DNA of 64,000 bases, from assembly GCA_977016875.1 (NCBI GenBank), contig CDRNST010000060.1:6014001-6078000 (forward strand). The letters are read 5' to 3'. The notes below the pieces were generated by a model, which saw only the letters and a list, made by a program, of their open reading frames with translations, had not been told where the DNA came from and searched no databases. Shown one piece after another: positions 34,295-48,657 of the stretch (position 1 is its first letter; each line of letters starts with the position of its first letter). This DNA comes from Pavona decussata (Eukaryota). The position numbers and the translations under genes are program-made.

Positions 34295-37200
34295 ATGGAG
34301 GTCGAGTTAACATGTCCAGTTTGTCTGGAACTGTTTCAAAGACCAGTAGTTCTTCCTTGTTCGCATAACCTATGCACTCCATGCGCAAGAAAAATCTTGG
34401 AACCTCATGGCGCTCCAAAAGCGTGGGCCAAATGGGTGAAGGAAAATCGAGGTGCCGAGTACAAATCTCATTTGGATCCGGATGTAAAATGCCCGACGTG
34501 TCGACGGAAAATACCGATTGACCCGCGAGGAGTGGACGGACTGGCGAGAAATCTGATTCTGGAAAATGTGATTGAGAGATTTAAGGAAGAGAGGAAAGCA
34601 CCAGGTATTATTAAGATTGTCATGTTACACATGTAAAATAAATATCTCAACTGCGGCTGAAATAATTACATCGACCTACTAAAGAGGTTTTGACAACTTA
34701 TAAGCAACAAAACTGGTAGTTTGACCGAAAGCTCAGCTGGGGAAATCTAATGCTTTGAGTTGATCAACCGACTGTACTTTGAAGCAAATAGAAGTGAAAA
34801 ATAAGCGTTTTACTTTCATTTATTTCCGTTCATAAATTGGGCTACATTAGGCAAGTAAAGGAACTTGTTGTTGAAGCATTTTCAGCACTGCAACTATCGT
34901 AAATGTGAAACCTGTTAGACCTGGGTTAAGAGAAAATAGTAGAAGAGTTCAAAAGCACTGAGCGCAGGAGAGAAGACGAAGGCGCGAGTACATAACAGTT
35001 GGAGGTCATCGAGAACGATAACTCATCGTCTCTCATCTACTCTTACTGTTTCTCGATGAGTTTAAGTAACAGTGGTTTTCGTCAAACGTTCCCATACATC
35101 GCAATTTAAGTACAAGTGTTTTTTATTTTGATTTAAATGGTTTCTTTGGACATTTACAAACACATCACCGTTTTCAATTCCTCTAGTCGAAATAAATCAG
35201 AAATGAGACGGACGTACAAAAAATATACATATTATTAAATTTCGGTGGAAATGATTTTGAAAATAAATTCGTATCTGTAGAGAAACAAGTCTCATTGCAA
35301 GCCGGGCTTATGTTGTTATATCATTATTAACGTACTTATTGAAGCCACAAAATCTTATTGTTATTTTTTGTTGTTGTTAATTATTTATTAGTACAAAAAA
35401 TGTTATGTTGTTTTATTATAAATTGACACATTAATGAGCGAGTTTTATTTGTAAAATGCCTCATTTTGATAGAAAGAACAAAGCAAAATTGTTGGAATCT
35501 CTTCTAGTTCTTGCCATTGTTAGTTCTAATTACCGTAATTGCCTTCGTCTTGTCTTCATCGTTCACATGAAACTAAAAAATGAAAAGATTACAATAAGAT
35601 GCCTGCTACTACGCATAATTCTGGTCATTGGCAATCCCTGTAAATGATCCCAGCTGAACGAGTTGGCAAATTTTCAATTGTACATGTGTGGGAATGATGT
35701 TTTGTGTATCAAAGTTGTGGAAGAACAACAGATGTTTGAAGACAATTAAAGCTGGTTGTTCGCAACTGAAAAGAAAACTTGCGGGAAGTATTTCTTTCCT
35801 CTAACAAAGATTCGTTTTTAACGAAAAGCATACGAAGCCAACGCGCGAGGCTGTGGGATGGCTGTCCCTTACTTTTGCAGCAATAATTAAGGCCACGGGA
35901 GCCATAATCAGGATTACGGCTCCTGTTAAGGCTTATGCGAGAGTCATTTTCAAAATCGATGCAATGCGAGTACCATGTTTACCTACATTTTCTTTTTTTT
36001 TTTAATGAAAATCTCATAAAAAGAATTAAGGATTTCCTCAAACTGAATGCATAGAATCGGCTCCGGAATGTACACTCTCCTCTGCCAGTGCTGGCCAACC
36101 AAATGCAAGCTTTATGGGAGCCAATGCGCTCGGTACAAAGTATTCCACGCGCGAAAGATGACAATTATCTATTAAAACCTCTCTTTCCTGATGCGCGCTA
36201 TACACGCACACATAAAGCGCTCGTTTTGCGATCGACTGTCTCAAAAACCCATTTCTTTCCTCCTCAAGAAATGAACGAGTGGTTTACAAATGCGCACTCA
36301 GAATTGCCACGTGTCTTGGTACAATAGATATTGATTGCTCCAGCAGCATGAAAAACACTCAAAAGGAAATTACTTACTGTTGTTTTCCACAAACAATCGT
36401 AAGACATTGTTAATACCGCTACTTGTATCGCAGGTGAAGCACCAGAGGAGCCTCTTCTGTGTCAGTTCTGTGAAGACTACTTACCTCAAAAGGCCACTCT
36501 CGCGTGCAATGAATGCGACTTCCTGTACTGTGGGACCTGTTTTGATACGTGTCATCCCAGTAAGGGCCCATTGGCTGGTCACACTATAGGCCCTGCAGTG
36601 GCAAGGCCAGTGAAGCGCAAAGAGGAGAGCCTGCAATGTCAGCTTCACAAGGAAGAGAAGCTAGCTCTGTACTGTGTTGATTGCAAGGCGCCAGTGTGTT
36701 ACTTGTGCAAGGAGTATGGACATCATAAGGAGCATAACGTGGAGCTGTTGGATCCGGTGTTTAGGAAAGCCAAGGTGACTGAAATATTTTCACTACAAAA
36801 GGATCGTGGGTAGTGGAGCTATAGTTAGAGAAAATTACGCGCGCACAGAAGACTCACGTGCGTGCGCGCGAGAATCGTGTGGGGAACGGGAATAACGCGA
36901 CAAAACGAATGAATAAGTCGGTATTATGTCAAAGAGATTTTCGTCATTTTTCGAGTATTCTTCTTTTGAGTTTACATTTAACGATTATTGTTCTTCATGA
37001 CACAATTTTAATTTTTTTTCCAGGAAGAACTGGCTCGAAGTTTGGGAACGCTAACAAGAAAAAATTATCACGTTCAAAAGACACTGCAGTCCTTAGAGGG
37101 GATGTGTGCTATTGCAAAGGTAAGGAAATACAGGCGAGAGAATCGCATGGTAGGATTTTGCCATGTGATAAAACCCATATCATACAAAAGTGGGTCGTCC

Positions 37201-46200: not shown

Positions 46201-48657
46201 GGACATGGTGAAAACCTCCGAGTTTGCGACAAGAAGGAAGAAAGATCGCAAGTTTAAACGACTTTACGAGGGATCCGCGCGTGAATACGCGTTGTACAGC
46301 GTCCCTTACAGTGTCAAGATCATTTCGCGCGTGCTTGGTGTTAACCCAACTGGTGACGGAACGCCAAGCGAGGAACTTGTAATGTCTACTCCAAAAGGTG
46401 TTCGATTTCTAGGAATACTACGCAACTTTAATGAAATATAAAGAGGGTGAAGGAGGGGAAGAACGAATTATGAGGGTATAATTTCTTACGCAGTTGCGGA
46501 GTCGATACACAAGCCTATTCGCCAGCAATTAGGAAGGTTACGCACTTGAATCATGAGGTGTTGGGTAGTTCGGAATTAGACGGGAATGTGACAATCTTAG
46601 GGAGTGGCAGAACTTCGTAGAAGGGAAGATCCAAGATTAGTAAGTCAAGGAAAAGCTGTTTCACATTCTTGATAGGTATTGTGAATGGACAGAATGTTGA
46701 TACAGCGTGGATACACCATGCAATGCATTGAGCATTACCTGTACCGTTAAGTGCAATATTTTACGTAATATTCTGTCTGGTCATAAGTGACGATAGCCCC
46801 ACTCACAGTAGCCTGCGAATAAGCTGTATTCGCAGGCTACACTCACAGTACACTCACTATTCCCTTTACTAGGACTGTACTTTCAGCTGGATCCATCATC
46901 AGCGAATCATGACCTGGAGCTAACAAACGAGAACTGCACCGTGAGTCTCAAGAGCCCCATGTACACGTTTATTCTGGGGAATGTGAAGCTAGACTCTGCC
47001 TGTCATTACTGGAGAGTGCACGTGGATGAATTCAGCTCTCATAATAAGCTCTCCATTATTGGTGAGTAAATGCAGACTGTGCTCCATATTAATGAATAAG
47101 AAACAGTCTGTGTTTAAACAACTGGGTTGGAAAGTATCGTCTCACAAGTACACCCTCTATTGTTCAAGTCGTTGGTTTTGAAGTGGAGCGTTTGTGACGT
47201 AGTCTTTATCTTGCTGGACTACATATCGCGCATGCGTTGTGTCATGTCCTTACCCAGGTGAATAAATGGGTTCGGGCAAATTATTTTGTGAGATTAGGTC
47301 TAGTGACTAATCTAGCGAATTCGTGCAACGAAAAGCATAAGGGCTTAGTTCCTAAAGAAACTGTGCTGCTGCGTCGGTGGGGAGTGGAAACGAATGATTG
47401 GTTTATCAACAGAGTTGATAAGGGTGAATTGGCCACCGTAAAGAGATTCGAGTGCTGACGTTTCGAGCGTTAGCCCTTCGTCAGAGCGAATCCAATCCCA
47501 TTCGCTCTACGAAGGGCTAATGACTGCCACTACGTTATCAACTCTCTTGCATAATTGTTGACACCAAAGATTCGCAATGAAAAGCATAGCTTGTAAAGTG
47601 CGATGGTAAAGCTTTGCACTCGCGTTTAATAAAAATCACCAGGCTATTTGCGGTAGGCTATCACACAAATGTTCAGGATTGATTTTTTGTTACTAGGCTG
47701 GTAAAAACTTCACCTTCTTGCTACAGAGAGCTTTTCCATTCTATTCTGTTGTACAGGTGTGGGAATCGCTCGCCAGGCCATCGAGGATCCCATTTTAGGA
47801 GAGGATTCTGATTCTTACGCGGTGCAAATCAACGAACATCCGAACGCTTCGTGCTCAAACACAAAAAACCGAATTCAGATCAAGAGGCCATCTAAAGAAC
47901 TCACTCACGCTAATATCGGGGTGCTTTTGAACTTGGATGAACACTTTCTGAGTCTGTACTTAAACGGTAAGAACAGTAGATTACTTAGATAGATAAGAGG
48001 ATGATTGGTGGGGGGAGGGTGAATTGGTGCTATTTCAGAGGTGTCTGTCACCCCTGGGTCATCCCCCTTTGGCTTTGGGTGCAGGAAGCAGTGAGCGGTC
48101 CGGAGCCTCAAATCCTTACCCTAGCATTTCAGACTAGGATCATTTGATTTTTTCATACAAATGTTTTGGCCTAATTCAGATAACCTTTCCTACTTATCCG
48201 GATCAGCGTGCGCAGTCAAAACACGCATGGCTAATACCGGCTGGCAAAATCTATACCTCATAGTGATGTTACACTCAAGGTTTTTTAACGCAGTAATGTT
48301 GCGTTAAAAGTTGCTCGCGTACTATGTTGGCAACTTTTAACGGAACAATTATCTGGGGCAACACTAGTGTTGCTGGTTTTTTATCTATCCTCAAAATCTT
48401 GCAACACGCGTTGCCACAAAGGCGATCCACCCAGACCAAAAGTGTGTTTGGGGAACTGGTAATCTAGTTTCATGCCCGAGGGGCATTGGGTAAAATACAA
48501 TGTCATTTTCATCTCAACAGGTAAGCTCCTGACCGATCCATCCAGGCCAAATGGACCAACGTTTGTGGGGATATCAGGAGAGTTCTACCCTGCTCTGAGC
48601 TTATATGGGACAAACGTCAAGCTTACCGTTCACACTGGAGAATCGTACGACAGCTAA
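34295..48657 (+). CDS. TRIM9-like paralog: RING, 2 B-box, coiled coil, COS-like region, then (FN3-SPRY)x3, ~1216 aa; exons 34295-34604, 36434-36774, 37024-37119, 38172-38405, 41137-41293, 41605-41901, 42451-42684, 43207-43518, 44132-44425, 44780-44968, 45438-45782, 46092-46397, 46873-47061, 47757-47966, 48521-48657
   Basis: [29 protein letters not shown]; B-boxes [11 protein letters not shown] and [13 protein letters not shown]; three FN3 exons ([27 protein letters not shown]); three SPRY domains ([27 protein letters not shown]). Fifteen GT-AG exons sum to 3651 nt with one terminal stop. Confidence 0.85.
38019..38122. mobile_element. TAGCC...GGCTA palindromic MITE with 9-bp TSD
   Basis: TAACGTCGC at 38010-38018 and 38123-38131 flanks a ~104-bp near-palindrome. 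Confidence 0.85.
38770..40640 (-). mobile_element. Decayed non-LTR retrotransposon (CR1/L2-type), 5' region and APE endonuclease domain, no RT domain; intronic and antisense to the TRIM paralog
   Basis: [59 protein letters not shown] are APE motifs. Stops and frameshifts present; ends shortly after [14 protein letters not shown]. Boundaries approximate. Confidence 0.85.
45037..45240 (+). repeat. ~28-30-bp minisatellite (GCGCGGGAAAACATGCAACCGGTGCCAA), ~7 units; a related inverted degenerate copy lies at ~12690-12790
   Basis: Head-to-tail units without unique spacers. Confidence 0.9.
46809..46839. mobile_element. 31-bp ultra-short TAGCC...GGCTA MITE with perfect 9-bp TSD
   Basis: CACTCACAG|TAGCCTGCGAATA-AGCTG-TATTCGCAGGCTA|CACTCACAG. 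Confidence 0.8.
47340..47550 (-). mobile_element. Penelope-like pseudo-LTR-derived repeat
   Basis: Second copy at ~14910-15053; contains a hammerhead core and an adjacent short inverted partial copy (TTCGCTCTACGAAGGGCTAA at 47501). Confidence 0.6.
47454..47487 (-). ncRNA. Minimal type I hammerhead ribozyme motif
   Basis: Minus strand reads GCT-CTGACGA-A-GGGC-TAAC-GCTC-GAAAC-GTC^AGC: CUGANGA and GAAA core, stem II, loopless stem III, GUC cleavage triplet, 3-bp stem I. Confidence 0.7.

Follow-up and report, generated by a model that had tools for sequence, protein, structure and literature searches.

Gene structure and predicted protein

The stretch described here, 64,000 nt of Pavona decussata DNA uninterrupted by any N (positions 6,014,001 to 6,078,000 of the forward strand of contig CDRNST010000060.1, assembly GCA_977016875.1; "the window" below, with coordinates counted from its first letter), carries at 34295-48657 on the plus strand what is probably a single gene for an unusual member of the TRIM family. 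Spliced together at GT/AG sites, fourteen open segments give one frame of 1,184 codons, or 3,555 nt when the stop is counted. The predicted protein has, in order, a RING finger, B-box 1, B-box 2, a probable coiled coil, a probable COS box, and then, three times over, an FN3 domain with a PRY/SPRY domain behind it. A continuous spliced frame of this kind, joining an RBCC core (RING, B-boxes, coiled coil) to three successive FN3-SPRY modules, had been proposed in an initial annotation made from the sequence alone, and was recovered here from the open segments, the splice sites and their phases. We think it likely, with appreciable room for doubt, that the whole is expressed as one 14-exon, 1,184-codon gene from a single transcript.

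The RBCC part is spread over exons 1 (34295-34604; start codon and a C3HC4 RING finger with a long loop), 2 (36434-36774; both B-boxes) and 3 (38172-38405; probable coiled coil), followed by exon 4 (41137-41293) with the probable COS box. Module 1 comprises an FN3 exon (exon 5, 41605-41901), an exon for the N-terminal part of the PRY/SPRY domain (exon 6, 42451-42684) and one for its C-terminal part (exon 7, 43207-43518), the last ending in a phase-1 donor, G|GTAAGA. Intron 7 (43519-44131) links it to module 2, which has the same three parts in exons 8 (44132-44425), 9 (44780-44968) and 10 (45438-45782). In module 3 the FN3 exon (exon 11, 46092-46397) and the exon for the PRY/SPRY N-terminal part (exon 12, 46873-47061) are followed by two further SPRY exons, one for the middle part of the domain (exon 13, 47757-47966) and, beyond an intron specific to this module, one for its C-terminal end and the stop codon at 48655-48657 (exon 14, 48521-48657).

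Introns after exons 2 and 3 are in phase 0; the intron after exon 1 and those after exons 4 through 13 are in phase 1, exon 4 carrying the first donor of the continuous phase-1 series, and each of the phase-1 introns cuts a Gly or Asp codon. This holds also for the two joints between modules, 43518/44132 and 45782/46092, so that the phase-1 module boundaries recognized in the initial annotation were found for all modules. Read-through from exon 7 into intron 7 does end, as had also been pointed out, at a stop codon at 43548-43550.

Domain identities

Domain and PDB searches were done exon by exon or with exon profiles. The RING of exon 1 is matched by Pfam zf-C3HC4 (35.0 bits; cut-off 21) and zf-RING_UBOX (35.4 bits), and its zinc-ligand pattern is complete in the translation (CPVC...C.H..C..C...CPTC). 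Exon 2 is matched by zf-B_box (53.9 bits over two stretches) and ANCHR-like_BBOX (49.5 bits), with the MID1 tandem B-box 2jun as its top PDB match (E 6.1e-17). Pfam fn3 matches all three FN3 exons (28.7 bits for exon 5, 31.2 for exon 8, and 19.0, E 0.0016, for exon 11), and a profile of the three has the TRIM9 FN3 domain 2db8 as its top PDB match (E 4e-12).

Single SPRY exons score poorly in Pfam because introns split the SPRY domains: exon 7 reaches E 0.006 with Pfam SPRY, and exon 10 as a single-sequence PDB query gave no significant match, success coming from the ortholog profile alone. A profile of the N-terminal SPRY exons (6, 9 and 12) matches TRIM67 (7qs5, E 3.3e-12), TRIM9 (7b2s, E 1.6e-10) and MID1 (E 2.3e-09). 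A profile of ten C-terminal SPRY exons (exons 7 and 10 of modules 1 and 2, taken from five genomes) is significant only against TRIM67 (7qs5, E 1.4e-09) and TRIM9 (7b2s, E 4.7e-06).

The modules are 34-48% identical among themselves. All three SPRYs carry the SRPxGP motif that had been singled out as a shared insertion; relative to the adjoining TRIM9-type SPRY described below, it amounts to six additional residues in each. Between a SPRY and the FN3 that follows it, a proline-rich linker spans about 8-10 residues, which suggests that the modules may be arranged as beads on a short string.

Spliced RNA from modules 2 and 3

Direct evidence for splicing comes from two RNA contigs. The first (X5 record 13; 1,402 nt, organism A) joins exons 9, 10, 11, 12, 13 and 14 with nothing in between; the lengths of its pieces agree with the model to the base, allowing an ambiguity of 1-3 nt per joint, and it terminates 6 nt past the stop codon. 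The second (X9 record 16), from a separate study, joins exon 8 to exon 9. Together they place six of the 13 junctions (exons 8/9 to 13/14) in spliced RNA, among them the passage from the second SPRY to the third FN3 at 45782/46092, one of the two joints for which the initial annotation had called for RNA data. Modules 2 and 3 thus share one mRNA.

Coral metatranscriptome contigs from two further sources (X1 and X3) were rejected as splicing evidence; they are unspliced and about 5% diverged from the window, and are DNA or pre-mRNA from a related coral.

Conservation in close relatives

Relatives were compared in long contigs of coral-associated assemblies (L009, L010 and L011) and in shorter JGI contigs, entry being via genomic open reading frame (ORF) fragments. 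The three long contigs carry the 14 exons in order, exon 1 lying outside L010, with AG/GT at equal positions and phases, including those around exon 3, the donor of exon 7 and the acceptor of exon 8. Per-exon amino-acid identity to the window is 70-95% in L009, 67-90% in L010 and 55-79% in L011; across the three it is 69-92% for exon 4, 69-86% for exon 11 and 77-95% for exon 12, while orthologs of exon 8 are 77-99% identical. The ATG and phase-1 donor of exon 1 are kept in L009 and L011, exons of the exon 13 type ending in ..LNG|GTAAG occur in at least eight database clusters, and the position of the stop codon is common to the window, L009 and L010. In L011, the most diverged of these close orthologs, the stop is absent at the shared position (16336-16345) and the frame continues beyond ..AYDE. 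Shorter JGI contigs (L015, L016 and L018) hold parts of the gene in unchanged order.

Between the window and L009 synonymous divergence (dS) is near saturation, at 0.9-1.8; at that level the ratio of nonsynonymous to synonymous divergence (dN/dS) is 0.055 in the RBCC-COS part and 0.074, 0.073 and 0.037 in modules 1, 2 and 3 respectively, falling to 0.008 in exon 12 of module 3. Conservation is strongest in module 3 and weakest in module 1, whose dN is 0.13 against 0.06-0.07 in modules 2 and 3. That modules 2 and 3 might be a pseudogene or decaying duplicates is ruled out by the dN/dS of 0.04-0.07, the intact splice sites and the spliced RNA. The C-terminal SPRY exon of module 2 has no copy outside the locus in the 602-Mb assembly.

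Age and evolution of the modules

Within the SPRY, one intron position is common to modules 2 and 3, after ..AV-G and ..II-G respectively; in module 1 the corresponding intron lies 12 codons later, after ..API-G, and module 3 has an extra intron (47966/48521) after ..YLN-G. In trees of the FN3 exons, the N-terminal SPRY exons and the C-terminal SPRY exons, every module forms its own clade across four species (support 98/94 for the FN3 of module 1 and 98/99 for that of module 3); the triplication must therefore be older than the divergence of these species. A stepwise duplication in which modules 2 and 3 separated last had been suggested. The intron position common to those two modules and missing from module 1, on which that suggestion was based, is real and favors it, but the tree of C-terminal SPRY exons pairs modules 1 and 2 instead (support 89/96). 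Because these short exon trees disagree with the intron positions, we make no claim about the order of duplication.

A more distant genome offers a further view of the array. Three fragments 36-39% identical to exon 7 lie on one strand of a 439-kb contig (ERZ25878582 ctg92211). First comes a module-1-like set of FN3, N-terminal SPRY and C-terminal SPRY exons (L005); about 26 kb beyond it, past a retrotransposon, comes a module-2-like set of the same three (L014/L013); and about 44 kb further on there is a module-3-like pair (L012), an N-terminal SPRY exon 52% identical to exon 12 and an exon of the exon 13 type (51%), which ends at the module-3-specific intron. Module-specific intron positions match those of the window. 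Equivalents of the third FN3 exon and of exon 14 were not found in the examined pieces of this contig. The three-module array is probably old, judging by this order and these intron positions; its linkage to a RING lies outside the evidence from the distant genome.

The retrotransposon between distant modules 1 and 2 is of the long terminal repeat type, with a zinc-knuckle Gag-like ORF and an RT_RNaseH match (L005 14642-20429 and L014 1-422). Introns in the distant genome measure 3-40 kb, as against 0.3-0.8 kb between module exons in the window.

One transcript or several

The step on which the single-transcript reading turns is the splice from exon 7 to exon 8, and here the argument is comparative. 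In a six-genome alignment running from exon 7 to exon 8, identity of about 0.75 in exon 7 gives way at 43519 to about 0.33, and from 44132 it is high again, at 0.82. The length of intron 7 ranges from 442 to 1,096 nt, and the six genomes show no conserved block within it and no conserved stop; donor, acceptor and phase of the joint are conserved. Intron 7 thus looks like a plain intron and has neither the look of an internal first exon nor that of a conserved 3' end; the splice itself is inferred from these comparisons.

Several observations weigh against the complete 14-exon transcript. No spliced contig spans 43518/44132, the other joint for which RNA data had been sought, and the RNA contig comparison covered the junctions from exons 7/8 to 13/14. 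In the two runs that yielded the spliced contigs, depth is zero at exon 7 and at the start of exon 8, and 3-6 over exons 9 to 14, a pattern that fits 3' bias combined with low coverage but also a transcript starting downstream of module 1. In the protein libraries searched with exons 7 and 8 there was no full-length spliced or annotated protein: an exhaustive protein search with exon 7 returned 23 matches, all of them short genomic ORF fragments running into flanking introns; a homolog search with exon 8 returned 14 genomic fragments and no spliced or annotated protein; and a scan of JGI metagenome contigs added five further genomic loci and no complementary DNA. In the distant genome, the 11.7 kb upstream of module 1 yielded no RBCC exon. 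Two of the N-terminal domains are also faint. Exon 3 matches Pfam TRIM_CC (E 0.001, 19.4 bits; cut-off 30) and PML_CC (17.5 bits; cut-off 23) below their cut-offs, its position and its 62-86% identity in L009-L011 fitting a coiled coil; the MID1 COS box 5im8 is the sole PDB match of exon 4 at E<=10, and a weak one (E 0.34), and Pfam gave no match for a COS box in that exon.

The zero depth over exon 7, and the confinement of spliced RNA to exons 8 to 14, are what one would expect if the locus made two products: an RBCC-COS-FN3-SPRY ligase ending in intron 7, where read-through meets the stop after 10 codons, and a separate RING-less, FSD1-like transcript of modules 2 and 3. We regard this as unlikely. 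The tail that would end the first product is 10-21 codons of unrelated sequence in the six genomes, variable in length as well as in sequence; AATAAA and ATTAAA are absent from intron 7 in four of the six, and the donor that such a product would leave unused is kept in six of six. Nor does intron 7 hold a conserved block that could serve as a first exon or promoter of the second product, or as a 3' end of the first. Exon 8 begins in phase 1 behind a strong polypyrimidine acceptor with no conserved upstream ATG, the sequence read through upstream of it differs in every ortholog, and a joint of equal design, from the second SPRY to the third FN3, is spliced in RNA. Another possibility is that the cassettes are chosen among, the main products skipping one or two modules and the three-module protein being a minor form. 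Exons 4, 7 and 10 end, and exons 5, 8 and 11 begin, in phase 1, so every such skip would be in frame, and to this extent the idea of in-frame module skipping raised in the initial annotation stands. No skipping joint occurs among the contigs, however, although contigs of such low depth could not reveal minor isoforms, and one long contig holds modules 2 and 3 in tandem, unskipped; we consider skipping as the predominant outcome improbable.

A TRIM9 ortholog next door

Upstream of the three-module gene, on the minus strand at 27383-32250, lies a canonical single-module TRIM9/67 ortholog, identified by exon matches, Pfam and PDB. Its RING and both B-boxes share one exon; then come a coiled coil, a lone FN3 and a SPRY that fits, stop included, in a single exon. 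Pfam recognizes the RING, two B-boxes, an fn3 domain (45 bits) and a SPRY domain (52 bits). The SPRY matches human TRIM9 (7b2s) with E 1.4e-71 and 243 bits, and TRIM67 with E 1.5e-68, whereas the C-terminal SPRY exon profile of the three-module gene reaches 30-41 bits against TRIM67/TRIM9. The two genes are 32-39% identical in the RBCC part. They are arranged head to head, with about 2 kb between their start codons, and the neighbor is present in this arrangement in L009, L011 and L015 as well; the stretch between may serve both genes as a bidirectional promoter region.

Since the neighbor is the TRIM9/67 ortholog, the three-module gene is a paralog. Its earlier description as "TRIM9-derived" is thus apt as to lineage, its best solved matches being the TRIM9 FN3 and the TRIM67/TRIM9 SPRY, but not as a statement of orthology. 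Most simply, it probably arose by inverted duplication of the neighboring TRIM9 ortholog, the likely parent lineage, with in-frame triplication of the FN3-SPRY unit to follow.

Relation to known proteins

TRIM9 and TRIM67 (Drosophila Trim9, C. elegans MADD-2) are class I TRIMs. Their RING, B-box 1, B-box 2, coiled coil, COS, FN3 and SPRY come in the order predicted for the Pavona gene, where coiled coil and COS box are probable, and it is to this pair that the top PDB matches of the FN3, N-terminal SPRY and C-terminal SPRY exons all belong. The Pavona gene differs in having three FN3-SPRY modules where they have one, a six-residue SRPxGP insertion in each SPRY, and SPRYs split by introns. FSD2 and CMYA5, with two FN3 domains ahead of one SPRY, set a precedent in the lineage for the multiplication of domains. 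To our knowledge none of FSD1, FSD2 and CMYA5 repeats the whole FN3-SPRY unit, and these proteins differ from the present one in lacking a RING or in having a single SPRY. They are TRIM-like proteins of Marin's subfamily B, with FN3 and SPRY tails of the same subfamily, one that includes TRIM9, MID1/2, TRIM36/46/67, FSD1/2 and CMYA5 and spans animals (PMC3503706).

All six human class I TRIMs have the order RING, B-box 1, B-box 2, coiled coil, COS, FN3, SPRY with a single tail (PMC2533329); the Pavona gene shares with the class an FN3 followed by a PRY/SPRY, but not the single tail. MID1 and MID2 (TRIM18 and TRIM1) are class I as well, and MID1 provides the top match for the tandem B-box and the weak match for the COS box; they too have a single tail module (PMC2533329), and the FN3 and SPRY domains of the Pavona gene are closer to those of TRIM9/67. 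The ryanodine receptor also has three SPRY domains per polypeptide (PMC3187800), but it is an unrelated calcium channel that lacks RING, B-box and FN3, with SPRYs dispersed instead of arrayed in tandem. A search of the full-text literature for multi-SPRY TRIMs brought up only these ryanodine receptor SPRYs and statements on TRIM5 dimers. The architecture had been said not to be known from characterized proteins; in keeping with this, no description of an RBCC core with three FN3-SPRY modules was found in the literature searched. Automatic gene models of this form may well exist in public coral annotations, which this search of the literature does not cover.

Possible functions

TRIM ligases are usually described as combining one catalytic core with one recognition domain, multivalency coming only from oligomerization. 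The domain with which TRIM5, TRIM21 and TRIM25 recognize their ligands is SPRY/B30.2, and the COS box gives microtubule association in MID1, TRIM9, TRIM36 and TRIM46. By analogy, the RING of the three-module protein, in which no zinc ligand is missing, would recruit an E2 enzyme, making the protein a putative ligase; the B-boxes and coiled coil would form an antiparallel TRIM dimer; and the probable COS box, if real, would put the protein on microtubules. The three SPRYs might then bind three different endogenous partners, giving six sites per dimer. Three different conserved partners are proposed because the SPRYs have diverged from one another, yet each is conserved between species; this points to partner diversity as against avidity for one ligand or an arms race.

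The initial annotation left open whether such a protein would be an immune sensor or a cytoskeletal adaptor. The former would be an innate sensor of molecular patterns, with fast-evolving pathogen-recognition SPRYs like that of TRIM5alpha, multiplied to widen the range of targets. Ligand recognition by the SPRY/B30.2 domains of the TRIMs just named lends this some plausibility, as does the roughly twofold faster evolution of module 1 noted above; a dN/dS of 0.04-0.07 in every module, at near-saturated dS, is hard to reconcile with it. One-to-one orthology of the modules across species also speaks against a sensor of this sort, as does a single-copy locus whose gene order is conserved, with the TRIM9 ortholog on its upstream side and a COPS2-like ORF on its downstream side; expanded immune TRIM families are unlike this, with the C-terminal SPRY exon of module 2 single-copy in the 602-Mb genome. 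The parent lineage, TRIM9/67, consists of neuronal and cytoskeletal adaptors and not of immune TRIMs. We therefore consider an immune sensor very improbable. Because of the strong purifying selection and the single-copy status, we favor a multi-specific adaptor ligase, which would act on endogenous cytoskeleton- or receptor-linked targets and not as a pathogen sensor.

In its most far-reaching form, which is speculative and which we would rate as possible at best, this proposal describes an anthozoan-wide ligase with six non-equivalent SPRY sites per dimer, displayed on a microtubule-bound scaffold, so that three different receptors or cargoes could be gathered and ubiquitinated by one RING, possibly tunable by in-frame skipping; it would have no counterpart among characterized TRIMs. 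The gene would represent a natural multiplication of recognition domains within one chain, old and strongly constrained, and a test of how SPRY specificity diversifies following internal duplication, with three comparable FN3-SPRY units ready for structural and binding studies. It also indicates that a second, lineage-specific gene has arisen from the cnidarian TRIM9 locus, which is relevant to "TRIM9" annotations in coral transcriptomics.

Other features of the locus

The COPS2-like ORF lies tail to tail with the three-module gene at 50164-51270 on the minus strand. The L010 ortholog likewise has a COPS2-like neighbor downstream (Pfam PCI and COPS2_C), and gene order is conserved on this side too.

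Intron 3 contains a fragment of a non-LTR retrotransposon, a 230-codon ORF on the minus strand at 39066-39755 that matches Pfam Exo_endo_phos_2 (endonuclease-reverse transcriptase; E 1.3e-12). A minisatellite with a 28-nt unit in 6.8 copies (57-nt double unit) occupies 45040-45230 in intron 9; in each of the four runs the summed contig depth over it and its flanks, as far as about 45380, reaches the thousands, and it must therefore belong to a very abundant dispersed repeat. Stretches of intron 10 (about 45783-45940) and intron 12 (47242-47613) have summed contig depths between a few hundred and 85,000 in every one of these runs, and inverted joints are numerous at 47378-47496 in intron 12. 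These two stretches are probably short dispersed repeats with a hairpin, of the short interspersed element (SINE) or miniature inverted-repeat transposable element (MITE) type.

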